A DNA stretch of 64,000 bases. Origin: Convolutriloba macropyga (lineage: Eukaryota). This document shows positions 32,432 to 63,536 of this stretch, in pieces. A model generated the notes under the pieces. That model had not been told where the DNA came from, did not search any database, and worked only from the letters and a program-made list of their open reading frames with translations. The stretch is taken from NCBI RefSeq assembly GCF_964194025.1, contig NC_134474.1:29450001-29514000 (forward strand). The letters run 5' to 3'. A program made the translations under genes and the position numbers. Every line of letters starts with the position of its first letter. Position 1 is the stretch's first letter.

Positions 32432-32721
32432 CTAATCACATCAGATATTCACATTTAATTCTCACTTCATAGCCGCAAGATTTTTTTCATAAATATTTTG
32501 GCTCCGACAATGTGCATCTCGAAGACTTTAAGTAACAACTGCAACCTTAAGAGCACGTTTGAACAGCAACGTTTTGATTGCAGGATGCTCATTTATTACT
32601 TTTAGCATGATTAAAAATTGAGAAAAAAAACTGTTCAAGGAGACATCAAAGGCACGTGATGATTCACTATGCAAAAAAAATAACCAGTTATTGTTTATTT
32701 TTAAGACAAAAAAGTATCTAC

Positions 32722-32994
32722 TTGAGAGAAATGCGAGGAAACTGAAGAAATATCAGGTAGCACAGTGACAGATGGTGTCAATGATGGGCTAAATTGGAGC
32801 ATGGACAAAGCCAGAGCTGCGGAATGTGAGGTTGAGGAATTCGACAACTGAGTCCTGGCCAAGTGGATTGAACTTTCAGCCAAGAGGTCATCCAGAACAG
32901 TTCTCCTATTCATCAGTTCTTCGCACACTTCCAAGAACTCAATAGCGATGCTGTCCAAAATTTCATCTAAACTACTCATGACTCCCGATTGCAT
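32722..32994 (-). CDS. CCDC115: CCDC115/Vma22 coding exon 1
   Basis: LDEILDSIAIEFLEVCEELMNRRTVLDDLLAESSIHLARTQ...LQF aligns by eye to the CCDC115 N-terminus (LDSLVLQLL..LEEL..KR..L......WLSLAKARY...LQY). Phase-0 GT donor at 32721. Confidence 0.8.
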
Positions 32995-40009: not shown

Positions 40010-40225
40010 TCAACTGGGAGACTCTTCAGCTTTAATCTTTGCAGCTTCGGCCCTGAGAGTGGTAACAACTGATGCGAGAGCTTCCGGATTCATTCCCATT
40101 TCTAACAGCTGTGTACAAATAATAAGTGTCTCTTTGTCCAGGCCAGTGTTGAGTAATCTAGACATCTCCATGAGAATATCAATGGCCTCTTTGGCTGCTG
40201 CTGAGGTTCCGAACTCACTCGTCAT
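40010..40225 (-). CDS. MZT1: Mitotic spindle organizing protein 1 (MOZART1), gamma-tubulin ring complex subunit
   Basis: 71 aa with the MOZART1 signature DILMEMSRLLNTGLDKETLIICTQLLEMGMNPEALASVV. Intronless. AATAAA on minus at 39898-39903. Confidence 0.95.
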   Translation of the reverse strand: MTSEFGTSAAAKEAIDILMEMSRLLNTGLDKETLIICTQLLEMGMNPEALASVVTTLRAEAAKIKAEESPS

Positions 40226-43896: not shown

Positions 43897-46800
43897 TGTA
43901 GAAATTAAATGGTGGTTCGGGGGGCTTAGCCTCTAAATTCCAACAAGTTTTGAAAAAAATTCCTAAGTATTGTTTTTCTTTAATTAGCCCTCTAGGCCAC
44001 CTTAATTCTCTTAAAGACCTTCTGCCCTAACTAACGTAAAAAGAAAAACGGGCACAATCTTATACTTAGAAAAAGTTAACTTACACCAGCTAACTTCTAG
44101 TACTTATGCCTACTGAGAAAATTATATCAAAAACAAGCCGAAATCTAACTACGAACTCTCTGTCTTACCAACAGAAAGGAGAGCCTTCAGTTACAAAAAT
44201 AAATTGAACAGAAGCTCCGAAAATCTACAAAAATCAAGCGGTATATATACTCCGCAGAAGTAAATAATACAGATATAATCAAGACTGATTCCTTTTGATT
44301 AACTAATCTTATGCAAAAAATTCCCAAAAAAATCACATGGTTGAGTAAAGTTTATCCCCAATTTGGTAAGTAACCTCTAATTTGAGCTGAGAAATCTTAA
44401 GATTCATTCAAGGTTCTGAATCCGTTCAGTTTAGACAAGGTCAGAACAATCATTACTAATCAAAATCAATATTTGTTCAATAAACCGCTTATATAGTTCT
44501 AACTTACTTAGCCAATGATCTTTCATTATAATTTAATTCAAAACTTGAGAAATAACCCACGGTTAGTACTTTGTTATCATTATTTAAGTTTTCTTTTCAG
44601 TCGTCAATCTCTGCAGAATTCTTTTATTTCGCACAACCTCGGCTGTATTGTCCTTCCTGACCACATCGGTTGCAGATCATCCCAGCTCTTCACTGGGACT
44701 GCTGGTCACCGATTATCACTTCCTGTCTCCTGATCAGATGCTCTATTGCCCACCGCGTCTTTTGCTGCCCAGAAAGCAAATCAAGAAGATGGAACTGAAA
44801 TTCTGGGTACAAGTGTACTTCCTCCATCTCGGTTTGCGTTGCCATTTCTCTGGTCGCCCGCACAACCACTGTTGCTGTACTCCAACGATCATCATTGTCG
44901 TCGTTGGTTGCGGGGATGATCAACCTCAATTCTAATGCCTTGCCCACAGTAACAGCAAGACCCCATATGCCTCGCCTCAACTCTTTGGTGATCTCCCCAT
45001 CGAGCAGTCCTGTTAAAATCCAGTCAGCCAACCTCTCCAGCTCTGCCTCTGGGGCCAAGGGGTTGTCACGTACACAAGTCTGATACGCTCTGTCGGCCCA
45101 CTTCATGAGCGTTTCTCCCTGATGCTGCCTGATGTTGTGCATAGAGATTGACAAGAGTTTGAGGATGTTTGTCTATAACACTTAAGGGGTTTAACAGCTT
45201 GTCCAACAGAAGACTTTGTCCAAAAGTACGGAGCACAGAAAGTCTTGAATCTTCTTAAATTTAAAACAACTATTGATAGCTATCTCCCCACAAAAGTGTC
45301 TCTGTATCAAATTTTCTGCTGTCTTTTTTTTAAAGACAAATGTGTAATATTTGTGAAATTTTATTTGAAACAATGTCATCCCAAAAAACGACGATTGTAT
45401 AACAAGCAGATGATTTTAGAAAAAATTAAGTCGATATAAACTATTCCACAGAAAACGTTAATTAAAAAAGCGGTCAAAGATTCGCCCTTTGAATAACCGT
45501 GCCCGAACATCTATCGTTTTTCGGGGCAGTTAACCAAATATATCAATCGACGACTGATATAAACAGGGAATCTAGGCTTCTGCTATGATAAAACATTCTA
45601 TCATTCAACTGTTTAATAAGTAGAAAGAGAAGGATTAACGACTTAACGCTTAGTTAAAAGAAATCTTAAACAGTAAAAGATCCCATCTCTGTCGCCAATA
45701 TAGAATTTAAAATTCAGCTAAGGTGGTTAGGAGGCCTTAGCCTCAAAATTCAAACAAGTTTTGAAAATAATTCTTAGTACTGTTTTTCTATAACTATAAA
45801 GTTTCTATATAAAGTTTTCTATAAAGTTAACTTACACCAGCTAACTTCTAGTACTTATGCCTACTGAGAAAAATATATCAAGAACAAGCCGAAAACTAAC
45901 TACGAACTTTTGCGAAAAAGTCCCAAAAAATCTCAACGCAATATGGTAAGTAACCTCTAATTTGAGCTGAGAAATCTTAGTTTTATTGAAGGTTCTAAAT
46001 CCGTTCAGTTTAGACAAAGCCAGAACTATCATTATTAATGAAAATCAATATTTGTTCAAAAAACCTCTTATACAGTTCTAACTTACTTAGCCATTATTCT
46101 TTCATTATAATTTAATTCGAAACTTCTGAGACATAACCCAAGGTTAGTACTTTGTTATTATTTAAGCTTTCAATTTTCTTAAGATATCTTAAGATAGAAA
46201 TTCCATTTCTACACCACCCACTCGGACTTGACTATTCTCCTGAATAGTTATTAGTAAAAACTAAAAGAATTACATTAACAAAGTGAAAGCACATTATAAT
46301 TACAAGTAGAAGTGTTATGAAGTTCTAGCGAGACCTTTGTCTCATTATCATGGCATATTGCATACAAAAGTTCAGTAAGTTTCCTCGAGTTTCTCACTCG
46401 TCGATCTGTGCAAAATTCTTTTATTTCGCACAATCTCGACTGTAGTGTCCTTCTGACCACATCGGTTGCAGATCACCCGAGATCTTGACTGGGACTGCTG
46501 GGTACCGATTATAACTTCCTGTCCCCTGATCAGATGCTCTATTGCCCAACGCATCTTTTGCTGCCCAGAAATCAGCAAATCCGGAAGATGGTAGTTAAAA
46601 TTCTTGGTTCAAGGGTACTTCAACTAGGGTGGTATATCCTTAGCCGGTATATCCCTCTGTGGTCACCAATGTAAATTTAAAATTCAGCTAAGGTGGTTCG
46701 GGGGCCTCGGCCTCTAAATTCCAACAAATTTTGAAAATAATTCCTCAGTATTGTTTTTCTCTAAGTTAGCCCTCTAGGTGATTTTAATTCTCTTAAAGAC

Positions 46801-47412
46801 CTTCTGCCCTAACTAACTTATAAAGAAAAACGGGCAAAATCTTATACTTAGAAAAAGTTAACTTACACCAGCTAACTTCTAGTACTTATGCCTACTGAGA
46901 AAATTATATCAAAAACAAGACGAAATCTAACTGTGAACTCTCTGTCTTACCAACAGAAAGGAGACTTCAATTACAAAATTAAATTGAAAGGAAGCTCTGA
47001 AAAACTAGAAAAATCAAGCGGTATATATACTCCGCAAAAGTAAATAATAGAGATATGATCAAGTCCGATTTCTATTTATAAACTAATCTTACGCGAAAAA
47101 GTCCAAAAAATCACATGGTTGAATTAAGTTTATCCCCAATTTGTTAAGTAACCTCTAATTTGAGGTGATAAATCTTAAGTTTCATTAAAGGTTCTAAATC
47201 CGTTCAGTTCAGACAAAGTCAGAACTATCATTACTAATCAAAATCAGTATTTGTTTAATAAACCGCTTATACAGTTCTAACTTACTTAGCCATTTTTCTT
47301 TCATTTTTATTTAATTTGAAACTTCTGAGAAATAAGGTTAGTACTTTGATATAATTTCTTAAGTTTTCTTAAATTTCTTAAGATATCTGAAGATACAAAT
47401 TCGATTTCTACA
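43897..47412 (-). mobile_element. Non-autonomous, gag-only LTR retroelement with three LTRs in tandem (Gypsy-like)
   Basis: TGTAGAAAT...ATTTCTACA termini and 5-bp TSD GTTCG (43892-43896, 47413-47417). LTRs at 46670-47412, 45699-46213 and 43897-~44595. PBS TTGGTGACCACAGAGGGAT and TTGGCGACAG follow LTR1 and LTR2. PPT GAGTGGGTGG precedes LTR2. Confidence 0.85.
44624..45154 (-). pseudogene. gag: Retrotransposon gag remnant with zinc knuckle
   Basis: RQHQGETLMKWADR matches the gag QxxxEsvxxfxxR motif. After a TGA (TCA in the sister copy at ~46490) the same frame reads ICNRCGQEGQYSRGC. The sister copy encodes CNRCGQK/HYSRDC with a frameshift. Confidence 0.8.
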
Positions 47413-48252
47413 GTTCGTAACATCACCTGTTTTGCTATTAAAGTCTTCTGTTCTGCTGTTCATTCAAACAAGAATTCTGTCAGTATTCTCCTATTCTATA
47501 GAATTACTTGTATTTAAATTAAATCTCCAGTAGAATCTGAAGGCTTTTACTTTGAAGGCAGTTGACTGGCTTCGTTTAAAGCAAAAATCAGTAAAATTGA
47601 CATTTTCAGGACATCTGATAGGTTTGATATGCAAGACATTTTCACTGTGACCGCATTAAACACATGATTAGGTACTCACTGATTTCTTTCCTTTTGGCAA
47701 AAGGTCTCTAATGATGCAAACTTATCAAAACGATAAAAGCCTGGTTATTAAAAAAAACTCATCTGACGATAATAGACCAAAACTAATGACCTTCAGTTTA
47801 TGCTGTATTAGATTAAGAAACTTCAATTTCGTTTCCAGTTAATTGAAAACTTTGAAATTTCTCTAGTAAAAATTGTTCTCAGGTCTCCAGCAAATGCACA
47901 GAACATTTATCAGTTTGGCACATATAATGATCAGCGGGTCAAAAACGACTGAATTATTTGCTGTTGTTTTACACCAGTTGTATTAGTACAGGTAGATGTC
48001 AGATTAGCTATCGTTGCAGACAACGGATACATCAGGGATCAGCCAAGGCGACTGTATCTTCAAACTCAAACTTGAGGTAACAAGTAAATCGCATTTGAAA
48101 TTGCCCGCCAATGCATCGAACGTAAATTGAATATTGTCAGAAGATTTTCTGTAGACGACAGTATTAAAAACGGTACCTCGTTGGAACTCCTTAAATTGAC
48201 ACTAATGAGTGCGAATAAAGAAGTTCTAATGAGGCACCGGTGTTAATGAATA

Positions 48253-48359: not shown

Positions 48360-49413
48360 TAATCATCAACAACTAGCCCAGTCTCCGTAACCTTAACTAA
48401 CTTAGGTTTCTTTCCAAGTTGCTCTACACATTTAAGATTGCTATGGAATCTCACATCAGAAGTTTACAATATTGTTAGTCTCTCAGAAGGGTGTGATGTT
48501 GAGATTAATAACAGTATAAGGTGAACCCTAGAAATGATCATTCTAAAGAACCGATCAAAATTGTCTACGTTTCAATTGATTCTTCAACAGAAAGTATCTG
48601 GATTTTCAAGCTGCACATATAACAGCTGCAAATTATTATTATCACGAAAAGATTTTTTTATTTAAAGGAATCACAGATAAAACAATCACGTTTTCTTGAA
48701 AGCTCATTAGCGTTTAGGAACCAACCTTAGTAGGCACTCACTCTACTACACAGCGAACAATGCAGTAATGCTATTCTTTATAAGTTGCGCCTTTGTTTTC
48801 CCTTTACTCTGTACTATCAACAAATTTGGAGCCAGAAAATATTTCTCAATAATTTTTTAGGCGTTAAAAGCAATGCTGTTCGTTTCAAAGACTGACCGAT
48901 TTTTTTAATCTAAGATTCGTTTAATTTTATCAAAAAGAAAATTCATGATACAGCGGATAACTTCTATTAAACTTTTTCTAGTCTGTAAACTTTCTATGAC
49001 AAAAATTTTACAAATAATAGGAGAAATAAAGTGTTCCTTTTTATTAAAACTTCCAAAATGCAGCAGTGTTTGCAGTCAAAGCATCCGCTTGATTAAATTC
49101 AACGGTCGATGAGCATTTTGGAACGATCGCAAAATTTTGCTCCTGGAAGGTCAAAATTGGTAATTAAAAAGTCGAAGTAGCATTTGGCTCCTTCACCCAT
49201 TACATGAGATCGGAACGTTAAAAATGCCTTGAAAATATTAGCCTACGCTTCGCAGCTCTAAATTCGGCAGAAGAACTAAATTCGGAGAACAAATACATTT
49301 GCACGCCATTCTCGCCATTAAATGCTCATAAATAAACTTTCGATTAAACATTTAACATTCTAGAACTCAAACGCTATCTTCTCCCGTACAAAAATCATTC
49401 TAAATACTGAAAT

Positions 49414-51087
49414 TCAGGAATCATTTATCACAAAATTGGGAAATTTGTGCCCATTATGATATGCTAAACTATACAAACTTTTCAAAAGGTCAACATTTTC
49501 AACAGCAAATTTTGAAACAGAATTCGAAGTGGACAAAATGTGATCCAGTATCCGTGTACATTCCATCTGCATGCTCAAATTAATCTGACTGCTTAGTCTA
49601 TCAAACACTTTGCCAATCTTCTCAACGTACGTCTGATCCAACCGTTGTACAAGTTGCGATGCCAAATCTGAATAAGTTTCATCACGCTGAATATACTGCA
49701 AAAAAGCAATTTCGCGAGAAGCGTCATCTATGTTCATGAACTGTGAAGAATCGGTTTCAGGGTAAGTTGCAAAACTATTCAGTTTCTGTTCTAAATATAT
49801 AAGCCTGGATGACAGTATAGACCGGGTTTCAGAAGTACCTCTGGTGCCACTGTTGATCAATTCAAGGATTTCTAATTCTATTTTCTGAACATCTGCTTCA
49901 ATTGGTAATATTTCACTTAGATCGACATTGGTTTCACTTAGAGAGTTGAAGTATTCTGTCAACTCTCTGCATGATTTGTCGACTTCTTTAGATGATAAAG
50001 AACTAACATTTTTGGAACATCGCAAATACTTGGCGTTCAGTTTGAGCAGTTCGCCAGGAATCGATTCTGCACGTAACAGTTGTCTCTGTTTATCCCGTCT
50101 TGAACATGTTGGAGGCCAGTCGAATGCTGGTCTATTCTGTATCTGCCTGATTGATTGATGTTCAGTTCTCGCTTTTGATTCGTTTTGATGTATAGAACCA
50201 ATGCTGGCGACGTCAGCCTCGTCACCTTTCCAGTTGGCTACTGTTTTACTATTATGTTCGACTTCCTTCGTATCATGTTTACTATTTAGTACAGTTTCGA
50301 CATCCTCACTTCCAGTAGAGCTTGAAACCTGCTCAATACTTTGATAAATTGCAACATTTGAAGCATCTTCTTGCATTCCAGTGTTAGAAACGTACGCCAT
50401 TCGTTTCCGATACGGGTCAGAATCAAAACTGTGTGCTTTTGATGCATCAGTATTTACTTTTTGTCCACATGGTATCTTATCAACGTTTTTGGTCAGACTG
50501 CTTGTTGAACGTCGCGAAGACATCTGATAAGTTGACCTACCACTTGATGGCTTGAAACTCGCCCTATAAGTAGTTTGATAGCCTCGGCTTTTTGGCAGTG
50601 GTGGAGGTTTGTATGCTCTTCCTCTCTCCCGTGCTGAAAGGGGAGCACTGCATCTTTGATTGCCTCCCGTAACACGAAGTCGCCCTCGTGACTTGCCACG
50701 TTCAACCTCTAACCTCTTTCTCTCTTCTTCTGCAATCGTAGTTTCATTGACAAGTAGGGTCAAATCCTCGCTTTCTGAATCGTTCAAGTAATCAAGATCG
50801 TTATCGAAGTCCAGCCTGCAATGCTTGATTCTGAGCTCAGAAGACTTTTTAATGACGTCATCTAAGTAGGACTCAAGGTCAGCAGTAGACGCGGACTGTG
50901 AATCGTTATCATCTTTTACATCTTTTGTGCTGCCACTCAGATCTATTGACAGAGCCGTCGCAGTCTCCTCTTCCTTTCGAGTTAACTCTTGTTCTAATTT
51001 GACCCACAAAAGACGATATCTGCGCTCCAAATTTTCCACTTCATCGTTTAAATCATTCAGCGCTCTGCTCAGATCATCGTCATTCAT
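49414..51087 (-). CDS. TEDC2: 557-aa intronless protein, probable divergent tubulin epsilon and delta complex subunit 2 (TEDC2/C16orf59-like)
   Basis: Long clean ORF, so coding is near-certain. The identity is by-eye only: N-terminal LSRALNDLNDEVENLE..YRLL, second helix DLESYLDDVIKKSSELR, disordered middle, and C-terminal LLKSLYSLAYHNGHKFPNFVIND match the TEDC2 motif order. AATAAA on minus at 49040-49045. Confidence 0.6.
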   Translation of the reverse strand: MNDDDLSRALNDLNDEVENLERRYRLLWVKLEQELTRKEEETATALSIDLSGSTKDVKDDNDSQSASTADLESYLDDVIKKSSELRIKHCRLDFDNDLDYLNDSESEDLTLLVNETTIAEEERKRLEVERGKSRGRLRVTGGNQRCSAPLSARERGRAYKPPPLPKSRGYQTTYRASFKPSSGRSTYQMSSRRSTSSLTKNVDKIPCGQKVNTDASKAHSFDSDPYRKRMAYVSNTGMQEDASNVAIYQSIEQVSSSTGSEDVETVLNSKHDTKEVEHNSKTVANWKGDEADVASIGSIHQNESKARTEHQSIRQIQNRPAFDWPPTCSRRDKQRQLLRAESIPGELLKLNAKYLRCSKNVSSLSSKEVDKSCRELTEYFNSLSETNVDLSEILPIEADVQKIELEILELINSGTRGTSETRSILSSRLIYLEQKLNSFATYPETDSSQFMNIDDASREIAFLQYIQRDETYSDLASQLVQRLDQTYVEKIGKVFDRLSSQINLSMQMECTRILDHILSTSNSVSKFAVENVDLLKSLYSLAYHNGHKFPNFVINDS

Positions 51088-51249
51088 GTAACCTTAAATA
51101 TTGATGAGTAACTGTAGAAAAAAAAACTGATTGAAAGAATTTAGGATAATTGTTCTTTAGATGTGACAGCTTTACTTATTGAGTGATAACAAAATATTGC
51201 ACGAATTTGAAAAATATGATGGAAACGGAAACTAAACAAGTTCAAGTTG
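51088..51249 (-). promoter_or_regulatory. Intercistronic-like spacer: poly(A)-signal variant plus strong 3' splice acceptor
   Basis: Minus strand: AATAAGTAAA (51180-51171), then T9-CTACAG acceptor (AG 51113-51112) 24 nt before the ATG, and a second TTTAAG 5 nt before the ATG. Confidence 0.55.
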
Positions 51250-54200
51250 TCAATGCAGTTTATAAACCAAACAATCAGATGCAATATTTGCAAATACTCT
51301 TCTGCAGTTATTCAAGATTTCTAATAAGGGTTCATTTACGTCACTGTCAACGCCTTTCAAACCACTGCACGAAATAGCTTCAATTGAAAAACTGAATTGA
51401 GATTTTTCAGCTCCTAAAGCTGACCAACATATCTCTGCAATTCGGAACAAAATGGATGAGACATCTTTGCACAGAGGGGGGAAAGCTTTGGCTATTCTTC
51501 CCATAGCTGGAATTAGATATTGGCAATAATTCTTCATTTGGTTTTTGGGTAACAGTTCGATCATCGTAGTCATAACGGATAAAGCTAATTGAGCTACCGA
51601 GAAGGCTTTTGGAATTGTGTACAACACCACCAGGTGTGAAATTAAATCAATTGCAAATATTTGTTGGTCTCTATGGGGCTGTTGAAGGAGCTCAGGCAAG
51701 AAGTCAAAGCAGCAATGCATAGATGGAATTCCTTGTGTTGTAGCCGACAACAGTCTATGCTCGTAGCCCTGAAAGTGAACCAACTTTATGATGTTGGAAT
51801 CTTCTAGAAACATCTGATGAACGTGGCTGCACACAATGCCCTGAACTTCTCTCAATTTAAGTCGCTCACAACTACTTTTAGAAGCCTCCTTGTTATCAAA
51901 CTCTTCCATTTCACAAGTCGCTAGACAGATTTCTAACATCATTTGAATAGCAGTCGACTCTTGTGTGGATATTAAAGCAGCCCGCAAGTCTTCCTTTTCC
52001 AGATCTTTAATCGCACTCGGAGAATTGGAGTTTCCAGAGCAGAACGAAATTTGATGCGACAAATAAACCCGACTTGAAACCAAAAAGGCCGAGAGAACTC
52101 GAAGTATAATAGTCAACAACGTTGGACATCGGAACACTCGTTCATCACATTTCAATACGATCAGAGGGTCATTCGTCAAATCTGATATTGTGTATTTTGC
52201 TGGAATATTTGAGTTTGATATCAGCACGTTGACTGTTTTCACCCACAGACGTCTGGGTAAACACGCATTGATGCAATTCCAGACATCGAACACTAAGTTG
52301 TGAATTCTTTGAGCTATGTTTGGTTTCAAAAGGCCAGGTAGAATAGACACAAAGGCGTCGAGCATATTAACCGAATCATTTTCAGTCATTTTTATCATTG
52401 CAAGCAAACTTCGAATACACTCTTGTGAGTATTTTACAGGATCTTCGAAAAGAAACAGCAACTTTGGAGCTGTTGGTAATGGAGTATTTTCTTCGTCGTA
52501 AAGCGTCATTGACGAACTAGCGTTACGGGCTAGTTTACTACTTCCATCACTGTTGTCGAAAAACCACTTAAGTGATACAGAGCTATTAAGTTGAAATAGC
52601 TGAGGGTAGTGGTTATAAGCTAGTTTTAACAACTTGGGATATAAATTAGACATTTGAGTTTGAAATTTTTCAGCTCTCCGGATAATGTATCGAATAGGAA
52701 CCAATTCCATAAGTCGTTCCGAGTATTGTAGATCGGTTAGTTTTCTCAGCTTACTCGTTGGATTGTTAGAAAATGTACCAAAACGATTAGTGTGCGTATT
52801 AAATAAATTTTGTTTAGCTGCGATAAGTAACGCCTCTTTATACGCTAAGGTATAATAGAGAATCAGAGTTTGAGATGCAAAAACTTGATCACACTTTAGT
52901 GAGTCAAAGGGTTGAACAAATAACTTCGATATGTCTTTTTCCGAAAAAGGTACTTCTCGAAAATCATCTGGTGAAATTGGGTTCATAATCGCATTTATGA
53001 AGTTGTCCGTCAGTTCAAGCATTAACTTATGGAGAGGAAACTTACAGTTCAGAATCTGTGAGAAAACCCACTGTGATATAGACACATGACTTCTTTCAAA
53101 AGTATTTTTCGACATGAGATTGCAGAAGCAATCGATTGGTAAATATGATATTTCGTTTTCGTTCGAACTGCTCAAAGCATTTGTAAATTGCATTTTGGAA
53201 CAGATCACTGCCATTTCCGCTTCTGAGAACACTAATTGAGCAAAAAATATGCGAATTCTGTTAAAGTTTTCTGTTCTTAGATTGATCGCAATTCCGTAAA
53301 CAGAGCTGACCAGACTTTCGAGTTCCGAATCTTTGTTATGTAGAAAATACACACCAATATTCAACAACGTTTCTACATGAGGTGCTGGCTCCTGGCCTTC
53401 TGATGACGAGTGACAATGCAATACCCACTTGATCCAGTCAAGAAATCGTTTCTCGTTTTCATGGTCCAATATGTATTGCGGTATCAATACAAGAGATGCA
53501 AGAACTACTTTACAGTAATTGTGAAATGACTCCAACTTCGTTACTTCAATGTTGAACTTTAGTGTCATCAGGTCAATAAGCGGCTTTTCATTCTCCAATC
53601 TCCATTGGGTCAACAATCGCAAGCCGGTGAAAACTTTGATCAGAGTTGTTGATCTAACTAAAGATGGGACAACATTCTGCGTCCTCAAAAAATGCTTCCG
53701 AACATCTACCAACGATGTGGAAATCAATAGTATACCTTTTGCCAGTTTGCTTCTCCAGAACTGTTTCAAAAACGGTTTCAACCATTTTTTCACATCATTT
53801 TTGCTGTCACTGAACAACAACTCACACAAAAAATTTTCCAAAAACTCGCTGTTCTCTGTCTCCTCACACTTGTGGCTAATCATATCAAACAGTAAGGGAG
53901 GGTTTAGTTGATATTGAATCAAATGATTTATCAAAAAGTTAGCCGAAGATTTCTCGATTGTACTGAGTCTCAAAATAAAAGCATTTCTCTCATTTTCAAT
54001 GTGAGGAGGTAGCGAAACCTGTAGCGCAGCTAGCAAACAGCTGCGATACGCAAAAGGTATATTTAGCAGTAACGTTTTAACAAACAACCAAGGAGATTTC
54101 GTGATCATGATAATCTGAACGAACTCCGCAATGCTGACAAAACTCGATAGTGAAGACTTCGTAAGTATCACAAAGAGGCAATTTATAACCAATTCTCTAA

Positions 54201-54669
54201 GAGACTCAACGTGAAACAAATGAAATCTGTATCCTGCCGGCAGAGAAGATCGCTCGTTACAGATTAGTCGTTTAAGCATTAAGAGCTGTGTGACCAGAAA
54301 AACAATTTGCTCGACTACTTGGCCATTCTGCTCGAAAACGGCCAAACTTGTCGCAGAAGCGTCACTTCGTAGCTTTTCTATAACCTCATCAATTGGCAAT
54401 TTTGATATCTCGAAACTCATCTGTCCGATTTGATTCAACATATCGGCTTTTGGCTTAAATCGAACATACTTTAAAACTTCGTTGATAACACCACATATTT
54501 GAGGGTTTCTCTTTATCTTTTTGGTGAGGATTGGATTGTGACTGGTTCCGAAAGCTGCTGACACGAGAAAAGGTATTACTACCGTAAGATCATCGTCAGA
54601 TAGCTCCTCCACTAACTTTGCTTTTGATACTATAGATGTCAACCGATCAAGAGTCCAACTTTCATCCAT
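51250..54669 (-). CDS. INTS2: Integrator complex subunit 2 (intronless, ~1139 aa from MDESW)
   Basis: Conserved C-terminal block LREVQGIVCSHVHQMF..IKLVHFQGY..GIPSMHCCFDFLPELLQQP..QIFAIDL, plus PRRLWVKTVN, DPLIVLKCDERVFRCP and QESTAIQ. First ATG at 54669; the ORF track starts at a TTG at 54726 inside the acceptor region. Confidence 0.95.
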   Translation of the reverse strand: MDESWTLDRLTSIVSKAKLVEELSDDDLTVVIPFLVSAAFGTSHNPILTKKIKRNPQICGVINEVLKYVRFKPKADMLNQIGQMSFEISKLPIDEVIEKLRSDASATSLAVFEQNGQVVEQIVFLVTQLLMLKRLICNERSSLPAGYRFHLFHVESLRELVINCLFVILTKSSLSSFVSIAEFVQIIMITKSPWLFVKTLLLNIPFAYRSCLLAALQVSLPPHIENERNAFILRLSTIEKSSANFLINHLIQYQLNPPLLFDMISHKCEETENSEFLENFLCELLFSDSKNDVKKWLKPFLKQFWRSKLAKGILLISTSLVDVRKHFLRTQNVVPSLVRSTTLIKVFTGLRLLTQWRLENEKPLIDLMTLKFNIEVTKLESFHNYCKVVLASLVLIPQYILDHENEKRFLDWIKWVLHCHSSSEGQEPAPHVETLLNIGVYFLHNKDSELESLVSSVYGIAINLRTENFNRIRIFFAQLVFSEAEMAVICSKMQFTNALSSSNENEISYLPIDCFCNLMSKNTFERSHVSISQWVFSQILNCKFPLHKLMLELTDNFINAIMNPISPDDFREVPFSEKDISKLFVQPFDSLKCDQVFASQTLILYYTLAYKEALLIAAKQNLFNTHTNRFGTFSNNPTSKLRKLTDLQYSERLMELVPIRYIIRRAEKFQTQMSNLYPKLLKLAYNHYPQLFQLNSSVSLKWFFDNSDGSSKLARNASSSMTLYDEENTPLPTAPKLLFLFEDPVKYSQECIRSLLAMIKMTENDSVNMLDAFVSILPGLLKPNIAQRIHNLVFDVWNCINACLPRRLWVKTVNVLISNSNIPAKYTISDLTNDPLIVLKCDERVFRCPTLLTIILRVLSAFLVSSRVYLSHQISFCSGNSNSPSAIKDLEKEDLRAALISTQESTAIQMMLEICLATCEMEEFDNKEASKSSCERLKLREVQGIVCSHVHQMFLEDSNIIKLVHFQGYEHRLLSATTQGIPSMHCCFDFLPELLQQPHRDQQIFAIDLISHLVVLYTIPKAFSVAQLALSVMTTMIELLPKNQMKNYCQYLIPAMGRIAKAFPPLCKDVSSILFRIAEICWSALGAEKSQFSFSIEAISCSGLKGVDSDVNEPLLEILNNCRRVFANIASDCLVYKLH

Positions 54670-54966
54670 TTTATTATCTGCAACAAAACTACCGGATGTT
54701 GTAATAGCATTCTTGTTGAGATACAAAAAAATAATACATTCAAGGTGCGGGTGAAACGTTTGCTAGTTTTCAAACCGAGGCAAATTTATGTACAAAACAA
54801 TACATTACTGTATTGTAGAAGAAAGTTCTGTTGCCCTAAAAAGAGCAAATTTACCCAAAATGACTAGTTTACCCAAAAAAGTAGCTCATTCATTCGGCTA
54901 AACGTTTTATGTACGTTCAGATCATGTCTCGAAGCATCGTGTAATGTACTGAATAAGCTGCATATC

Positions 54967-54998
54967 AAACAACCAATCAGAAATGAGATTGGTTGTTT
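54967..54998. promoter_or_regulatory. Palindromic double CCAAT box upstream of INTS2
   Basis: AAACAACCAATC-8nt-GATTGGTTGTTT is a perfect 12-bp inverted repeat ~300 bp upstream of the ATG. Confidence 0.4.
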
Positions 54999-56370
54999 CT
55001 TCGCCTTGTGACACAGGAGATCGTGAACTTAAATCCCCGTTCACATTGCTCATGAACTTAACAGTAGCAGCATTGAAAAGAGATAACGAAAAGAGATAAC
55101 GTCTTCAAAAAGTAAGTTCGATGACACAACTTTTAGTTCAAAAACAAAATTATTCCATTTACATCACCATTAAACAGCAGCTGCAAAAACGAACAACCTT
55201 CTTCAAAATGCTCGAAAAATAAACCAAGGCCACAGAACAAATCAAGAATTATAAACTCGAAAATAAACAAGATAAAGCTCCTTACAACTCAAAGAGATCT
55301 ACCACTGCACACTAAAGAGACCAAACAACATGGAAATTTAACAAACACAAAGCCACATTTGTTGATAAAAACCGGCAGTAAATCAAAAAAAATTGTGACC
55401 TTGATAGAAAGACAAACACTGCGTTATGGCAAACCACTTTGATTTTAAAAAGCTGGAAAAAATTTCCTGCCCTTAAGAACGTCAATAGTACGGAAGACAA
55501 CAACCAAAAGGCTGAAACTTATAATAATATTGAATGTAGAAAATTCTAACGACAAACAGGACTTTTCCTAGAGTCTCGCGGCTATCAATTGCGATGACAT
55601 CCAAACACAGAGAAGAACATTTCACTGAAAATCATAGTTGGTCTTCACAATTTCGAAGAAAGCAAAGGAGCCGAATAAAGGACTTACAAAACACAGAAAG
55701 ACTCAAAGAACTCTACGCAACTGGTCAAAACATTTGGATGAATAACAATTGCCATAAAGTATAATCATTAGACTGTCGATAAAGCAACACATGTGGAAAC
55801 TGGAAGCTATTTTGGTTCGCTAAAAGAAAACTTTTTCAACGCCCTCTGCAAACAAAACTCTTTGCTATTAAATGAAGAAAATAGAGCGCACGGAAAGTGC
55901 AATTCAAAAACCCAGGTAAAAGACTCGATAAATGAAAGTCACGCTGTCAAATCAAGAATTTACTCAACTTGTCAAAAGGTTTGTGTACAAACGCTTAAAT
56001 TTCAGGATAAGTCACGTCCGAATTATAAGAACTGTTGCGAGAAAAATAACGATAACATTTGCAATGGGTCAGCAACTTGAACTGTAAATCAATTTCAAAG
56101 CACAAACCAAAAACGTTAAGATGAAATACACTAAATTGCTCTCCCATATTTACTCAAACAATGAACTTCACCAAACGTGAGCAATTGCATGGACCATGAA
56201 ACAACACTTCTTGACAATTTATTCGCAGTATGCTTACAGCCAATTACATCTAAACAAGCCTAACGGAGATCATTCCGATTTCATTTTGGCTGTATGACAG
56301 TCATTTAGAGGTGCGTAGCACCATCGGACATGCCAGAGCAAATCCAACAGCAATAATCAAATTTTAATTA

Positions 56371-56826
56371 CCCGGGCTGAAATTTCAACCTTAATACATC
56401 CTTAATTAGCGGGGATTAGGGTGTAATGCTTATTTAAATCCTAATTATCGGGGAAAAGATTGTAAGAGTATAAATTTAAAAAAAAAACATTATTGTATTT
56501 ACACTCTTTTCTTCATTCTTTTTACAATCTTTGCAAAGAGTAATTTAGGGAGTACTGATAAAAAATTACTCTTACATAATTACCATTATAACGGAAATTG
56601 AAACTAATAATAATAGCATCAGTTGGCACAAGGTGAAAGTAACATGTTCCAGAGAGGAAAGATGGGGGATCAATCCTCAGTACCCCAATTTAGTTTTTAA
56701 ACTTAAACTCTTAAAATAACATTCTCCGACCGTCATTTAAACGGAGCAATAGGGGTGTAATTTTTTTTATTAATACACTCTTCACACTCTTTTCCCCGTT
56801 ATTTTTGGGGAAATCCTCGGTCCGGG
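56371..56826. mobile_element. CCC-ended MITE with TA 2-bp TSD (CACTA/EnSpm-like)
   Basis: CCCGGGCTGAAATTT versus reverse-complemented right end CCCGGACCGAGGATTT; TA on both sides. Internal (T)ACACTCTT/AAGAGT motifs in both orientations. Confidence 0.65.
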
Positions 56827-56893
56827 TAGCTTTATTAGTATGAAAGCGGGCCTGAGTTTTAAATGAATTTTATAAAAAGATCCTCGATGACAG

Positions 56894-57620
56894 TGTTGGA
56901 GCTGAGCTCGCTAAGCTTGCGTAGGCGGGAAAATAGAAACAAAACACTTTCTGTTGTCCTAGTCATTTAATAGTTATAGTTCTAGTTCTAGTTACAGTTT
57001 GCAACGTGAGAAAAAAGAGAAAAATGGGGAAATAACAAAAAACAACACACAGAACTCAACGTAGCAGCCGCAGAAAACGGCTGAAAGTATAACTCAGCAA
57101 AATATTGCAAAACAAATTGTCTTGAGCAGTAATCAACGTGTTACTGTGTCTTGAACTAGAAATATTCCTGAGCAGTAAATTGTTACTGTGTCTTGCATCA
57201 ACGAATTAATGGTGCAGAAATTCAACTGTTACAACCCCAACTTCTGGTATTCTCAACTTGTGAGTACAAAAAGCAAAAGACAACTTAAGTTTAAATTTAA
57301 ATATTTTTGCACAAACAGGTCTTAGACATATATCTTTGTCTTCGATTTGTTTTTTCTATCTGATTGAACATGTATACATAAAGTGATCCCGCATAGTGCG
57401 ATCTGTAGCAATCCAGTTCAAATGGATAGTTGAAAAAACTAAGATCAGCGAATAGTTACGAACTAAAATAGTTAATGCAACGGTAAGTACAGCAGAACGG
57501 ATATACAGTTACAAAAGCAAACTGCATAAACGAAGTATTCGGACAGATTTTGTGACCACTCAGAACGAACTGGGCGGTGTAAAACTTTCTTTGTGAAACT
57601 CAAGGAGAGCAGCCGTTACA
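56894..57620 (+). repeat. 5' LTR of the BEL/Pao element (727 bp, TG...CA)
   Basis: Matches 63506-64000. Ends GTTACA immediately before the PBS TTTGGTCCGCGGACCCGGA (tRNA-Tyr-like). Confidence 0.9.
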
Positions 57621-58134
57621 TTTGGTCCGCGGACCCGGACAGTGGAATAAACTGCTGTCCAACCCAACAGTCGAAGTGACAAAGTCATCAACGAACAAGA
57701 ACGAAACCCAACGAGCAATTCAACAACGCCAAGCCAATTAGGCAAAGCAAATAGGAACGTTGAAAAGCAAAACTCAATTAAAACAAACAAACAAAGGAGC
57801 TGCAGAGATTCAAGCTGCAGTCCCGAAGTACACAAGAAGTGACTCCGTCACAGAGTCAAAGGGTTTTGGATCGACAGATCAACAACTTGCGAAACAACTG
57901 GTTTCAGAAACAAAAAGAAGGCTCTGAGCTCATCAAGGGTCGAGATCGACCAAGCAAGCTCAAGAATCTTTATCAGCAGATACTGCAATTGGACGACAAC
58001 GTTCAAAAACTCGTGAATAAGAAAACTGAGACTCTCCGATACCCAGATATTTTTTTTAAAACGCCAAGTCGAGACAGAAAAATACTTTCGATATTTGAAC
58101 GCAGAGTGTTTACTGTATATCCACGAGAAACAAA

Positions 58135-61100
58135 CATGACGGATCAACAGAATCAAACTGTTCAATTGACAAGCGATGCAGAACCAACTGCCGCTAAGAA
58201 TTCGCAGTCTGTTGTAGGAGTTTCTCAACAAACTGTTGAAAATGGACACCCAAACAAGGACAAGGATTGAAAGGCCTCCTCTGATAAACAAGGTAAAAAG
58301 GCAGAAAAACTTGCGGCTTTAGAGAAAGACTTTGCAGCAAAAATGAAGAAAATTGAAATCAAATTGAAAAGGAAAGCGCTTGAAATCGAGATGCAACTTT
58401 TTGAAGAAGGTGCACTGAAACTGGAATACGAGAAAGAAGCTCTTGACCAAGAGCATCAGATTCTGATGAAAGTGCAGCCCCTAGTATTCGAAGTAGATCA
58501 CAATTCAATTGGAAAACCCCGAAGAACAAAGATGTTTCCGGTTGGCTCGATAACTCGGATAAATTCTCCAACTTGCACGATTATAGTTTTGAGCGTGCAA
58601 AAACCAGGATCGACAACAATTATCCCAGGGTAAGCTTCAATCGCGAAGATGTACTTAAGTCACGGTTACCAAGTGGAGAGCGTGCCAGCGGAGCCTGGGA
58701 ACAAGACAGATTTAAGCGCAATAAACCAAGCAGTAGTAGTCAGATACCTAAGTTGAAGTTGAGTTCTTTCGACGGAAACCCCCTAGAGTGGCCGGAGTGG
58801 TCGAATATGTTCAAAGCAACAGTTCACCATCGCGATATACCCGACTCAGAGAAAATGAGCCATTTTGTTGACAAGTAAAGCAAAGTCAGCGATATCAGGA
58901 ATGGGCTATTCGGGAGAGTTCTACGCTCAAGCGTGGGAACTCCTGGGACGGAAGTTTGGGCGACCTTACCTAATTGTCGACGCTCAGCTTAACATATTGC
59001 GCAAACAACAACCAATTCGAATGCACGACTCAACGGCTATAATTAATTACTCAATAACAATCAGCAACCTAGTTAGTGTACTGAAGCAATACAATTATGA
59101 GGGCGATCTGCGTTCAAGTTCAACACTGCAAGTGGCAATTGAAAAACTGCCCCCAAACTTCAAAGAAAAGTGGTTCTTCTTCGTTGACGAGTGTCAAGGA
59201 GATAGACCCGATCTCACTCTCCTTGAAAAATGGCTAGCATGAATGGCTTTTGTCCATGAAGGAATGCCATCAACCAAGAGCGAACGAAAGGAAGAAGATC
59301 AACCAAACGCTAACAAGGAAAAACGATTCTCAAAATGTTCAAATATTAGTGCGAGTTCGAATGCGAACGAGACGAAGCAAATGCAAAACAACTGCCCACA
59401 GCGGATGGCACTCATAAAATATGGAACTGTCCAATATTTAAGAGTATGAATGTCACCGATCGCTATGCGTCAGTGAGAAAAGAACGCTTATGTTATGGAA
59501 GTCTGGGGAAAGCGCATGCAATCAAAGATTGTAAAGTCCACCCGTGCGATATAAATGGATGTACCAAAAGGCACAACAGACTGCTACACTCAGAAAATTA
59601 AATAGACGAGGGTAGTCACGCAGTTAATGTAAGCGCAGCAACAATCAACCAGAGTAACCAAGTTACTAGTTTTCTTCAAATAGTTCCGGTATCGGTTCAG
59701 AGCGGTGGTAACAGGTTGACTACCTACGCTTTACTCGATAGTGGGTCAACAGTATCATTCATCGATCAAAGTGTCAAGGATCAACTACAAGCCAAAGGCA
59801 CGGACGTTACCTTGAGCATAGCTGGCATACATGGGACGCAAGATTTGAGCACAGAAAAGGTTCCTATCACAGTAAAGGGACTACATTCAAAGGGGCATTG
59901 AATTGAAGAGTTTTCACACCCATCACTCTCGTTGGGAAACACGACATATGATTACAAGGAACTGAAGAACAACTTCAGACACCTGAATGTTCTCACTAAC
60001 AGAACATTCAACCTGATGGAAGTAGGCGTCATACTTGGACAAGATGCCTACGAAATTCAACGTCCATTGGACTATATGATTGGAACACGAATTGAGCCTT
60101 TCGCCGTCTTAACAGAATTAGGATGGGTAGTCAGTGGTCCCATGACAGGCAAGAAAAGTCAAAATGTTAGTCATTTCGCCTCCACAGAAGATGTGAAAGT
60201 GGCCGAAATTATACAATCTTGGTGGGACATAGAAACTTATGCTTCCAAAATAAATGTTGTAATACAATCAGAGAAAGAGCAGCAAGCTCAGAAGTTTTTA
60301 GAGAGCACAAGAAGTTTACGGGCGAGCGGTACGAAGTGGGCATGCTCTGGAGTGAATCAGAACCCAATCTTCCAAACAACTACGGCTCGGCCCTTGGTCA
60401 GCTCCACTCAGTGGAACGAAGATTCCAACGAGACCCAAAGTTAAAAGAATTGTATCAACAGTCAATTGATACAGATGTTGAAAAGGGATTTGTGACGATC
60501 CTTGATAAATCGGAAGTCAACGGCACTTTCGGAAAGTAATGGTATTTGCCACACCATCCAGTACTAAACCCCAACAAACCAGGTAAAGTTGCAGCAAAAT
60601 ACAAGGATGTATGCCTAAATGACAAGCTATTAGCCGGACCCGATCTACTACACGGATTGATTGGAACAAAATTCAGATTTCGAGAAGGACCAATAGCCTC
60701 AACCGCAGATATTGAATCAATGTTTCTGCAAGTGAAAGTTCCTGAACGGGATAAAAACTGCTTGAGATTCCTGTGGCGACCAACAGTGAACGAACCTGCG
60801 CAAATTTACGAGTATCAACGTCATGTTTCGGAGCAAAGAGTTCGCCAACACGTGCCAACTACGCTCTGAAGCGAGTAGCCATCGATAACGAGGACGAGTT
60901 CCCAATTGCAGCAAAAACAATCCAAAACAACTTCTACATGGATGATTTCATCAAGTCAGTCGAAACACCTGAGGAAGCAATCAAGGTTTTCAAACAACTA
61001 CAACCTCTTCTCTCAAAACATGGATTTGAAATGAAGAAGTGGATCACCAACAGCGACGTGATAACCAACGCAATCCCAGAGGATTTAAGATCAATCAGCA

Positions 61101-63536
61101 ACGCAAAGCAGGTCGAAATAGAACCCAGCAAGGAAAGTTCATCCGTGCTTGCACTTCAGTGGACGATTATCGATGATAGTCTACAGGTTTGTAGAGGTGC
61201 AAGCAAAGAAGTTGAGACCCCAATCACCCAAAGGAAGATCTCTTCTCTAGTTTCTTCAGTGTTTGATCCTCTTGCACTGTTTGCACCATTCAGTGTTCAT
61301 ATGAGACGACTCTTGAAGACCATCTGGACAAAAATTGGACAACATTGGGACAAGTCAGTGGAACCTAACGAAGAAGAGGAGTTTCTGAAATGGAAAGACC
61401 AGCTTCCAGAAGTAGCAGAAACCAGCATTCATAGAAGATACTTCAGCACAGCCAAGGAAAAATGGGAACTTCATGTGTTTGCCGACGCATCTGAAGACAC
61501 AATGTGCACAGAGGCATACCTACGTTCAAAGCCCAAAGAATACTCAGCAGACTTAGCATTTGTAATTGGAAAGTGCATAGTTGAACCGATGCGACACCTT
61601 TCCATACCACGCTTGGAACTACAAGCAGCAGTGATGGTGGTGAGACTTAAAGAACAGATAGTGAAGGAACACGAATCGAAGGTTCTTAGTTGTAAATTTT
61701 GGACAGACTCCACTACTGTTCTGCAATGGATTCATAGCTCCCACCGTAAGCAACAGGTGTTTGTTGCAAACAGAGTGGCCGAGATTTTGGATACAACTAA
61801 TGTTTCACAGTGGAATCATGTGAGTGGTATTAATAATCCAGCTGACATCGGGACACGAGCGATCAATGTTGACGAACTTAAGAGAAGTGAATGGCTCACT
61901 GGGCCGGCCTGGTTGAAGCAACGAGAAAACGAATGGCCTTAACAAGTGAATTTAACATTTGCTTCGGACGAACAGAACGACCAAATGGCCTTCTCAGCAA
62001 AGGTTGAAGAGAAGAAGCTGATGATTCAGTGGGAACGATTCAGCAATTTCTATCGACTTGTAAATACAATGGCATACGTACAGCGCGTAATTAGAAAACA
62101 CAAACCGGCAACAAAACACTAAGTGTTGAAGAAAGAGAGGGTGCACAAGCAAGCATCTTCAGGCTACTGCAGAAAGAACAGTTTGCTGAAGAGATGAAAT
62201 CTCTCAAGGCTGAAAAGGAAATTCTAAAAAACATTAAAATCCTCGAGTTTTCACCGTTCATTGACCAGCAAGGACTTATTCGTGCTCAAGGCAGAAAAGG
62301 TAAAAGTCAATTGAACTTCGAAACCAAGCATCCAATACTGTTACATTGGAAGCACCATGTAGTTGAATTATTCTTGCGCATGAACATAAGAATAGTCATC
62401 ACGAAGGTACTGAACATGTCAGAAACAAAGTTCAGCAGAAATTCTGGATGCTAGGCAAACGAAATGCTTTGAGATCGATCAAAAACAAATGCATTAGATG
62501 TCGAAAGGGAAGAGCCCAAATAAAGGCATCAGTAATGGCAGATCTACCTGAGGAGCAACTAGTCGCATCAACAGTGCTCGCGAATGTGGGCGTAGACTAT
62601 TTCGGACCATTCACAGTAAAGATTGGTCGAAGAAACGAGAAGCGTTGGTGCTTTCTGTTCACATGCCTTACTGTACTCGCGGTACATATAGAGATTGTAC
62701 CAAAACTAGACACTGATTGTTGTCTGAACGCAATTAAGCGATTCGTTGCTCGAAGAGGCAAACCGGTCAAAATTATAAGCGATATCGGGACAAACTTCGT
62801 TGGATCTGAAAAAGAACTGGCATAGTATATAGTAGCATGGAACAAGAGGCAAATTGAAGAACATCTGATTCAACAAGGTGTCAGATGGAAGTTCAACCCA
62901 ACTGCAGCACCACACTTTGAAGGAGTGTGGGAGAGACTGGCTAGGAGTTGCAAGAAGGCAATGTATGCAGTGCTGTGCAATCCATCAGTCACGGAAGATG
63001 TTCTGTCAACCACGATGTGTCTTGTTGAACAGACGCTGAATGCTAGACCGCTGACACAGGTCAATTCTGATGCTACCAATTTAGAAGCTATTACTCCAAA
63101 CCACCTCCTACTTGGCAACAAGAACCTTTGTTTACCGTATCTATCAGGTGCAGAGCAATTTGTTGATCATAGAAAGCTCTTCCGACAAACGCAAGCTTAC
63201 GCAGACCTCATCTGGGACAGATTCCGCAAAGAGTACTTGCCAACGTTGAATCGTCGAAAAAAATGACAGACCACAACGGACAGAAGTCTTCAGCAGGGTG
63301 ATCTTGTGTGGTTAGTGGAAGACAGTGACAAACGTGGATATTACGATCTGGGTCGAATAACCGAAACCTTTGAAGGTTCCGACGGAGTGATTCGATCAGC
63401 GACAATCAGAACGAAAGATGGATACTACAAGAGACCAGTAGTGAAGCTCGCTCCAGTGCTATCAATGGACGAAGATGTTTTCACGAAGGAAAACAGGGCC
63501 GGCGGTGTTGGAACTGAGCTCGCTAAGCTTGCGTAG
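58135..63536 (+). pseudogene. BEL/Pao gag-pol polyprotein broken by many stops and frameshifts
   Basis: DUF1759-type IPKLKLSSFDGNPLEWPEW; Cys/His knuckles ~59400-59590; protease YALLDSGS; RT PHHPV, DIESMF, YMDD; RNase H LHVFADAS; integrase CIRC, VDYFGP, SDIGTNF, WERL; C-terminal RPVVKLAPV. The ORF ends inside the 3' LTR. Confidence 0.93.

Follow-up and report, generated by a model that had tools for sequence, protein, structure and literature searches.

A conserved INTS2–ORF2 gene pair in an acoel genome as a candidate spliced-leader-resolved dicistron

The gene for subunit 2 of the Integrator complex (INTS2) is followed in this acoel genome, after only 162 bp, by a second long open reading frame (ORF2), which raises the question of how ORF2 is expressed. 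Sequence-only reading of the window (the whole 64-kb stretch analysed) had suggested either a polycistronic pre-mRNA resolved by spliced-leader (SL) trans-splicing or two alternative terminal exons joined to a shared leader. The basic layout was confirmed: the two ORFs are intronless, lie on the minus strand (Table 1) and have no further ORF of at least 150 aa within 4 kb of them. The TE-rich surroundings described in that reading are also real, with high-copy repeats at 56366–56829, 56894–58200 and about 43900–47413. The locus was compared among four acoel genomes, namely those of species A (the window), B (ENA ERZ25878734, loci L001/L019), C (L002) and D (L018).

Table 1. Features of the INTS2–ORF2 locus and of the wider gene cluster (window coordinates).
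Feature	Coordinates	Strand	Description	Basis
gene4, first exon	32701..32994	-	Conserved gene; fourth cluster gene	81.5% identity over 92 aa to L019:12506-12781
MOZART1 (MZT1)	40010..40225	-	71 aa, single exon; third cluster gene	Pfam PF12554, E 1e-21
AATAAA, canonical	49040..49045	-	About 370 nt past the ORF2 stop	Sequence reading
ORF2	49414..51087	-	557 aa, intronless; acoel-restricted family	Profile search, alignment
INTS2 stop to ORF2 ATG spacer	51088..51249	-	162 bp, 28% GC, no ATG	
T9-CTACAG 3' splice acceptor	51112..51127	-	Proposed SL trans-splice site	Sequence reading
AATAAGTAAA	51171..51180	-	Overlapping poly(A)-signal variants AATAAG/AGTAAA, 70 nt past the INTS2 stop	
INTS2 (Integrator complex subunit 2) CDS	51250..54669	-	1139 aa, intronless	Pfam PF14750
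INTS2 3' splice acceptor	54677..54692	-	gtagttttgttgcag/ATAATAAA-ATG	Sequence reading
Single-copy region upstream of INTS2	54727..56360	-	No other copy in the genome except two matches of about 70 nt	

The identity of INTS2 is secure, since the product matches Pfam PF14750 with an E value of 2.4e-174 (residues 131–1103 on profile positions 100–1048 of 1050), and named INTS2 orthologs are 27–35% identical to it. The open frame 51250..54726 begins at a TTG (1158 aa), and the real start is the ATG at 54669. The gene has a single match in the genome and is thus single copy, and DNA reads reveal 17 synonymous versus 6 non-synonymous SNPs in it. The four sequencing runs covering 50000–55999 are all DNA, with even depth over the genes and their flanks, with SNPs and without joints or SL loose ends. 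A splice acceptor precedes the gene (AG at 54679–54678), such that the exon would start at 54677, 8 nt ahead of the ATG; likewise, the ortholog from species B is preceded by gtaaagtttttcag, 10 nt upstream of its ATG. The single-copy region upstream of INTS2 is the only nearby room for a promoter, an outron or a leader exon, and it does contain the two candidate donors that had been pointed out there, GTAAGG (55285–55280) and GTAAGT (55687–55682).

ORF2 is also single copy in the genome. In its deduced product, a coiled coil occupies the N-terminal part, the middle is disordered and contains the motif AYKPPPLPK...QTTY, and the C-terminal domain is helical and ends in KFPNFVINDS. Among 1.84 billion proteins, an exhaustive HMMER profile search retrieved a family of only five representatives, all of acoel type. 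The earlier label of ORF2 as TEDC2-like found no support in this search, in a Pfam scan of the five proteins that admitted E values of up to 10 and returned no family named after TEDC2, or in a sequence search of the PDB, which returned no match. A word-index search likewise gave no family assignment for ORF2, the best score among ESM Atlas features was 0.80, below a useful level, and the TEDC1 model PF14970 had no significant match in the genome. What is left of the label is a weak lead from Foldseek: using one of the two AlphaFold models of ORF2, both of low confidence (pLDDT 42 and 50), mouse and bovine TEDC2 ranked third and fourth among 550,129 Swiss-Prot models. The query was the model with pLDDT 49.7, and the alignment runs end to end, but with E values of 0.014–0.015, probabilities of 0.33–0.38 and TM scores of 0.10–0.14. 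We regard ORF2 as a fast-evolving, acoel-only gene unrelated to INTS2. The canonical AATAAA downstream of its stop (49045–49040) is likely the 3' end signal of its mRNA.

The spacer between both genes has the order of elements that had been described for it, with the poly(A)-signal variant AATAAGTAAA followed, about 58 nt further on, by the T9-CTACAG acceptor close to the ATG. The T9 tract spans 51126–51118 and the AG ends at 51112; the putative exon would thus start at 51111, 24 nt ahead of the ORF2 ATG (51087). When acceptors were defined strictly (at least 12 pyrimidines out of 15, at least nine T, and no upstream AG), they occurred at 0.55 per kb on the minus strand; that at 51111 is the only one in 49000–56500, and the chance of one landing within 25–30 nt of the ORF2 ATG is about 0.015. 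The statement that the spacer lacks an obvious splice donor does not hold strictly, as a weak donor-like GTAAAG (51175–51170) overlaps the poly(A)-like signal and lies 64 nt before the acceptor at 51111.

INTS2 and ORF2 are collinear and co-oriented in all four acoel genomes, with identities for ORF2 among them of only 29–40%. The spacer is short in three of the genomes (162 bp in the window, 241 bp in species D and 614 bp in species C) and reaches 11.3 kb in species B, where it consists of satellite and SINE-like repeats. The pattern of identity pairs A with B and C with D, from which the short spacer is likely ancestral. An acceptor is found 4–24 nt upstream of the ORF2 ATG in the four species, and at 4–6 nt in species B, C and D. 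An alignment of the spacers from species A, C and D revealed no conserved block besides the acceptor and the ATG context, and neither a promoter nor a Ur-like element could be defined in it. Species B shows AGTAATAAAGC, with a canonical AATAAA, 12 nt past the INTS2 stop, while species C and D have no hexamer of the AATAAA type near this stop, indicating that conservation of the layout does not extend to the poly(A) signal. Conserved gene order alone may reflect slow rearrangement of these genomes.

The conserved order extends beyond this pair. In tblastx comparisons of the window with the related loci, most matches were noise from sum statistics, and the only real additional ones corresponded to MOZART1 (MZT1) and to a conserved gene, gene4, whose first exon had no match in Pfam. 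Both are co-oriented with the pair, and the order ORF2, MZT1, gene4 is the same in species A and B. Spacing differs between the two, with 451 bp from ORF2 to MZT1 and 230 bp from MZT1 to gene4 in species B versus 9.2 and 7 kb, respectively, in the genome of the window, where the 9.2-kb spacer carries high-copy repeats. Gene4 has a TTTCAG acceptor 7 nt ahead of its ATG, and ORF2, MZT1 and gene4 from species B are each preceded by an acceptor. Overall, YYNCAG occurs within 25 nt of the ATG in nine of ten gene starts from the cluster (background 8–10%, P about 2e-9) and TTTCAG in five of ten (background about 2%, P about 4e-7), with the proviso that these starts include orthologs and are not fully independent observations. 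ATG-proximal acceptors are known to characterize SL trans-splice sites in nematodes.

Is there an SL that could be used at these sites? A 32-nt SL has been published for the acoel S. roscoffensis, in which 30.2% of the genes are SL trans-spliced (PMC9911081). This sequence, whose 3' end reads ...CTTATTAAATAGA, was found with up to two mismatches in 2234 places of the genome containing the window, versus none for the reversed control, and the copies are followed by diverse sequences. The organism performs SL trans-splicing. No copy of the SL lies within the 64-kb window, and the genome contains no SL-tagged retrocopy of INTS2 or ORF2. The proposal of an SL-resolved operon is partly supported, by the layout, by the use of an SL and by the presence of the pair, with an ATG-proximal acceptor, in three other acoels; SL trans-splicing itself is not new, having already been published for S. 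roscoffensis. Our literature search found no paper describing operons in acoels; the word operon is absent from PMC9911081, which reports no polycistronic units and does not discuss the INTS2–ORF2 locus.

We give about an even chance to the reading that INTS2 and ORF2 form an SL-resolved dicistron, which may be what is left of a four-gene ancestral operon with repeat-inflated spacers. Transcription would start in the 1.6 kb of single-copy DNA ahead of INTS2, the 32-nt SL would be trans-spliced to position 54677, 8 nt ahead of the INTS2 ATG, and the INTS2 mRNA would be cleaved and polyadenylated shortly past AATAAGTAAA (51180–51171). The downstream RNA would then receive the same SL at T9-CTACAG (51111), resulting in an ORF2 mRNA that would be capped, have 24 nt of native 5' UTR and end after the AATAAA at 49045–49040. 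We infer the use of the SL at 54677 and 51111, as well as the co-transcription of INTS2 and ORF2, from the genomic sequence. The pair is probably the part that stayed compact in an older collinear arrangement, INTS2 > ORF2 > MOZART1 > gene4, in which repeat insertions lengthened the other spacers in different lineages. The stronger proposal, that these four genes constitute an ancestral SL operon of these acoels that is still one transcription unit despite repeats of 7–11 kb, appears unlikely to us.

The space available upstream of each gene, 162 bp for ORF2 versus 1.6 kb of unique DNA for INTS2, also favours the dicistron. An alternative is two independent units, with an ORF2 promoter in the 3' coding part of INTS2 or in the spacer and an outron trans-spliced at 51111, without any operon. 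Non-coding room for such a promoter is limited to those 162 bp (241 bp in species D), no promoter-like block is conserved between the spacers of the different species, and order and orientation are maintained in the four genomes. [quoted passage not shown] Additionally, ORF2 of species B keeps its acceptor at 11.3 kb from INTS2, suggesting expression without tight linkage; such linkage is thus dispensable, and a separate promoter may exist for ORF2 or may easily be gained. On balance we consider independent units unlikely. A shared upstream leader exon, cis-spliced from the donor at 55285 or 55687 to either 54677 or 51111 to produce two unrelated proteins from alternative terminal exons, is improbable: both donor-like sites do exist in the single-copy region and acceptors precede both ORFs, but chance alone would give about one donor-like hexamer of such quality per kb, and the abundant SL machinery acts on exactly this type of unpaired acceptor. 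Moreover, similar acceptors head MZT1 and gene4, 9–18 kb further on, and ORF2 from species B, 11 kb away from INTS2, which a shared leader would hardly explain.

The donor-like GTAAAG in the spacer allows for yet another explanation, a 64-nt cis intron (GTAAAG at 51175 to AG at 51112) that would be removed either from a bicistronic INTS2–ORF2 mRNA or from an ORF2 transcript starting late in INTS2. This site and the putative poly(A) signal overlap, no AATAAA-type signal lies near the INTS2 stop in species C or D, and donor-like sites recur 69–113 nt past this stop, with a consensus GTGAGT in species D (69 nt) and GTAAGG in species C (113 nt). Nevertheless, from 0.3 to 0.8 such sites are expected per spacer by chance, and we rejected them as evidence of a conserved cis intron for lack of significance. 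The GTAAAG site is a weak donor, lacking G at +5, and species B contains a canonical AATAAA right past the INTS2 stop. With eukaryotic scanning, translation of a second cistron past an ORF of 1139 codons is implausible, which counts against a bicistronic mRNA, and we hold a cis intron to be quite improbable in either form. Finally, T-runs are common in a genome with 28–37% GC, and unrelated genes might be adjacent by chance, with a fortuitous acceptor-like motif between them. This last option seems very improbable, given that the pair is kept in four genomes with such low ORF2 identity, that acceptors are enriched at P values of about 1e-7 to 1e-9 and that no second strict acceptor exists within 7.5 kb.

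SL trans-splicing and operons arose repeatedly in animals, including nematodes, flatworms, tunicates, chaetognaths and others. Trans-splicing is known from acoels, and a verified operon from Xenacoelomorpha would add an independent lineage in which to study SL-enabled polycistronic transcription. If the four-gene operon were true, it would be the first documented in Xenacoelomorpha and would imply that metazoan operons tolerate intercistronic regions of the size of TEs. The comparison of four genomes provides a test case, because the same cluster is compact at different junctions in different species, and allows testing whether operons are broken by inserted repeats or whether transcription runs through them. 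For annotation, the locus is a warning that gene models of this genome need splitting wherever SL acceptors and poly(A) sites occur. INTS2–ORF2 is one locus, and its present value is that of a well-defined and directly testable candidate.

Among known systems, the closest SL is that of S. roscoffensis, which is the same 32-nt sequence and for which trans-spliced genes were separated by their SL and poly(A) peaks (PMC9911081). The operons of Macrostomum lignano resemble the INTS2–ORF2 cluster in that a single SL serves about 30% of the genes, the genes are co-oriented and repeats inflate the distances between them, which peak near 100 bp after subtraction of repeats (PMC8629364). Most of them comprise two genes, with a modal distance of about 100 bp, and their inflation by repeats resembles that of the repeat-filled spacers of 7–11 kb in the cluster described here. 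However, they rest on the mapping of SL and poly(A) reads, whereas the layout of INTS2–ORF2 was read from DNA, and M. lignano is a platyhelminth, so that its SL system is unlikely to be homologous to that of acoels (Xenacoelomorpha). SL2-type operons of C. elegans resemble this locus in the succession of a poly(A) signal and, within about 100 nt, a U-rich tract and an acceptor, with the ATG downstream, as well as the clustering of functionally unrelated, housekeeping-type genes. They differ in having a dedicated SL2 for the downstream genes, as opposed to the single SL published for S. roscoffensis, and only about 58 nt separate signal and acceptor at this locus, where both genes are intronless. 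In Ciona and Oikopleura, a single class of SL resolves polycistrons with short intercistronic regions, as we propose for INTS2–ORF2, although these often have almost no intercistronic sequence and no separate poly(A)-signal region, in contrast to the 162 bp with a signal-like element found here.

The two genes lie on the minus strand as uninterrupted, co-oriented ORFs 162 bp apart, and the sequence-only reading of this layout, including its poly(A)-signal variant and T9-CTACAG acceptor, was accurate when we re-read the sequence; its statement that there is no obvious splice donor needs correction, given a weak donor-like GTAAAG in the spacer. From the INTS2 stop codon, the spacer contains 69 nt, the poly(A)-like element AATAAGTAAA, about 58 nt, the acceptor and 24 nt to the ATG (51087) of the 557-aa downstream gene, ORF2. 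An ORF scan found no further ORFs of at least 150 aa within 4 kb of the pair. Under a strict acceptor definition (12 or more pyrimidines among 15 positions, 9 or more of them T, and no AG farther upstream), which retrieves 0.55 sites per kb on the minus strand, the spacer acceptor is the only site within 49000–56500. Upstream of INTS2 there are 1.63 kb of single-copy DNA (54727–56360) with high-copy repeats at the borders; those at 56366–56829 and 56894–58200 yielded >1400 and >4000 first-look candidates, respectively. For ORF2, the upstream space is limited to the 162-bp spacer. At position 55741, contigs from two DNA runs (X3 and X4; another individual or sample) diverge from the reference with 25–28 unmatched letters, suggesting that the putative promoter region carries an insertion/deletion polymorphism ~1.07 kb ahead of the INTS2 ATG. 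Farther upstream of the cluster, a 389-aa ORF (60773–61942, plus strand) is assigned to an LTR retrotransposon fragment; the public gene call in a sister assembly (L015) gives PF05380 (Pao retrotransposon peptidase).

Features of the gene cluster and its junctions (A, the window's own genome; B–D, related acoel genomes)
Feature	Position or length	Strand	Basis or remark
INTS2, uninterrupted ORF	51250..54726	-	ORF scan
ORF2, uninterrupted ORF	49414..51087	-	ORF scan
Poly(A)-like element AATAAGTAAA	51180-51171	-	read in sequence
Acceptor T9-CTACAG	AG at 51113-51112	-	read in sequence; 24 nt before ORF2 ATG
gttttgttgcag ahead of INTS2	8 nt before INTS2 ATG	-	read in sequence
Weak donor-like GTAAAG	51175-51170	-	within poly(A)-like element, 64 nt upstream of acceptor
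MZT1 (MOZART1)	40010-40225	-	Pfam PF12554, E 1e-21; next co-oriented gene after ORF2
MZT1, species B	L019:12051-12275		451 bp from ORF2
gene4, first exon (at least 92 aa)	32701-32994	-	conserved between A and B
gene4, species B	L019:12506-12880		
INTS2-ORF2 junction	A 162 bp; B 11.3 kb; C 614 bp; D 241 bp		
ORF2-MZT1 junction	A 9.2 kb; B 451 bp		high-copy repeats in A
MZT1-gene4 junction	A 7 kb; B 230 bp		

The upstream ORF matches Pfam PF14750 over nearly the whole model length (E 2.4e-174) and is identified as Integrator complex subunit 2, as had been proposed; its product in the public collection (P0002) has 1139 aa, starting at the ATG at 54669. Its closest relatives are two proteins in ENA assemblies (66% and 58% identity), followed by spiralian and arthropod INTS2 at 27–35%. 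The gene is intronless in A and B, its 5′ half is in at least four exons in D (L018:4458–9753) and there is at least one intron in C (L002:8582–12466), a difference suggesting that introns were either lost in the A/B lineage or gained in C/D.

Four species carry an intact ORF2 reading frame of full length, which marks ORF2 as a real gene. Neither a Pfam scan nor a PDB search found a relative, and an exhaustive HMMER profile search over 1.84 billion representatives retrieved four besides itself. The family alignment (A2) comprises an N-terminal coiled coil, a conserved block LESYLDxVIKKSxxLRIKxCKLD and a motif SARERxKAYKPPPLPK...QTTY; after a long disordered stretch that is not conserved come a WPP motif and a helical C-terminal domain whose last residues are KFPNFVINDS. 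The AlphaFold models were poor (pLDDT 42 and 50); when the better one was compared with Swiss-Prot models using Foldseek, TEDC2 of mouse and cattle took ranks 3 and 4 in end-to-end alignments, with non-significant scores (E 0.014–0.015, probability 0.33–0.38, TM 0.10–0.14). Because of these scores, the TEDC2-like label given from sequence inspection is a weak lead and no finding; were it correct, the neighboring MZT1, a gamma-tubulin ring complex component, would make two adjoining tubulin-related genes. Between samples, ORF2 showed 3 synonymous vs. 11 non-synonymous SNPs in its N-terminal and middle part (50000–51087), consistent with a fast-evolving, largely disordered protein, and the disordered region looks nearly unconstrained within species; the SNPs in INTS2 were 17 synonymous vs. 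6 non-synonymous.

We compared the window's own genome, treated as Symsagittifera roscoffensis (species A), with assemblies ERZ25878734 (B; L001 and L019, one contig), ERZ25074608 (C; L002) and ERZ26859043 (D; L018). The C-terminal part of INTS2 is 72% identical between A and B, 79% between C and D and ~60% across pairs, and the genomes are therefore grouped as (A,B) and (C,D). An ORF2 ortholog is next after INTS2, on the same strand, in 4/4 genomes, and the short spacer occurs on both sides of the split, so it is likely the ancestral state. MZT1 was not found in C and D within the 8–10 kb of DNA examined per locus, nor was gene4 in the DNA examined. The first exon of gene4 is 81.5% identical between A and B over 92 aa and did not match any Pfam model; its N-terminus may resemble CCDC115/Vma22-type proteins. 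The long INTS2-ORF2 spacer of B contains SINE-type, tRNA-like repeats with a GGTTCGAATC box (L019:517–593 and 2569–2645) and a satellite array with a period of ~170 nt (L019:3712–5608), and the ORF2-MZT1 spacer of A contains several side-by-side copies (~43900–47413) of a ~670–760 bp repeat, 87–90% identical to >1900 first-look candidates genome-wide. Together the genes make up a single collinear, co-oriented cluster; individual junctions that are compact in one lineage are inflated by repeats in another.

The spacers of A, C, and D share no alignable sequence beyond the acceptor and the ATG context. The acceptor precedes the ORF2 ATG by 24 nt in A, 6 nt in B and 4 nt in both C and D, that of INTS2 by 8 nt in A and 10 nt in B, and that of gene4 by 7 and 19 nt. 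Acceptor motifs are clearly enriched within 25 nt of the ATG, with YYNCAG at 9/10 gene starts (background 8–10%, binomial P ~2e-9) and TTTCAG at 5/10 (background ~2%, P ~4e-7), despite these P values being optimistic because the motif was chosen after data inspection and orthologous sites are partly dependent. Acceptors so near the start codon typically mark spliced leader (SL) trans-splice sites in nematodes.

The 32-mer SL published for S. roscoffensis (PMC9911081) has 2234 matches with up to two mismatches in the 1.18-Gb genome of A, and its reversed control has none. Twelve sampled exact copies (L003–L014) are directly followed by unrelated sequences, and several share the continuation GATGAGCCAGCGAGGCATG. 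In this species 10,433 genes (30.2%) are reported to be SL trans-spliced, and the word "operon" is absent from the genome paper (PMC9911081). In a full-text literature search, no paper was retrieved that treats operons or polycistronic mRNAs in Symsagittifera, acoels or Xenacoelomorpha; SL trans-splicing is therefore already known in this species, and operons, as far as we found, are undescribed.

The most economical reading of the pair is an SL-resolved dicistron, to which we give about an even chance. A dicistronic pre-mRNA would be transcribed from the region upstream of INTS2, the INTS2 mRNA would be released by polyadenylation after AATAAGTAAA, and the ORF2 mRNA would receive the SL by trans-splicing. 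That the ORF2 mRNA starts through splicing at 51111, the first exon base after the acceptor, is very probable, and that the partner is the SL seems fairly likely. The weak link is co-transcription, because ORF2 of species B sits far from INTS2 yet keeps its acceptor, no AATAAA-type hexamer occurs close to the INTS2 stop in the spacers of C and D, and spacers hold donor-like sites, though at about chance frequency.

We ordered the rival explanations beginning with an internal promoter and a short outron for ORF2, which would dispense with co-transcription and would have as ORF2's own upstream space in A only the 162-bp spacer; we consider it rather unlikely. The shared upstream leader exon, proposed as a second possibility by the sequence-only reading, would use the acceptor ahead of each gene, in a species with an SL already available, and appears improbable. 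Slightly more doubtful still is a 64-nt cis intron inside the spacer, whose donor would be the weak GTAAAG embedded in the poly(A)-like element. Chance adjacency comes last and, with the same order and strand in every genome compared, is very improbable.

If the dicistron reading is true, this would be an SL-resolved operon in a phylum with published SL trans-splicing but, as far as found, no published operons, and to specialists operons in an animal that uses an SL would seem plausible and hardly surprising. The four-genome comparison adds a cluster that is conserved and whose spacers have been inflated by repeats in a lineage-specific way. The flatworm Macrostomum lignano is reported to have operons with the same pattern of repeat-inflated junctions, in which the intergenic distances of SL genes show a peak near 100 bp only once repeats are subtracted (PMC8629364).
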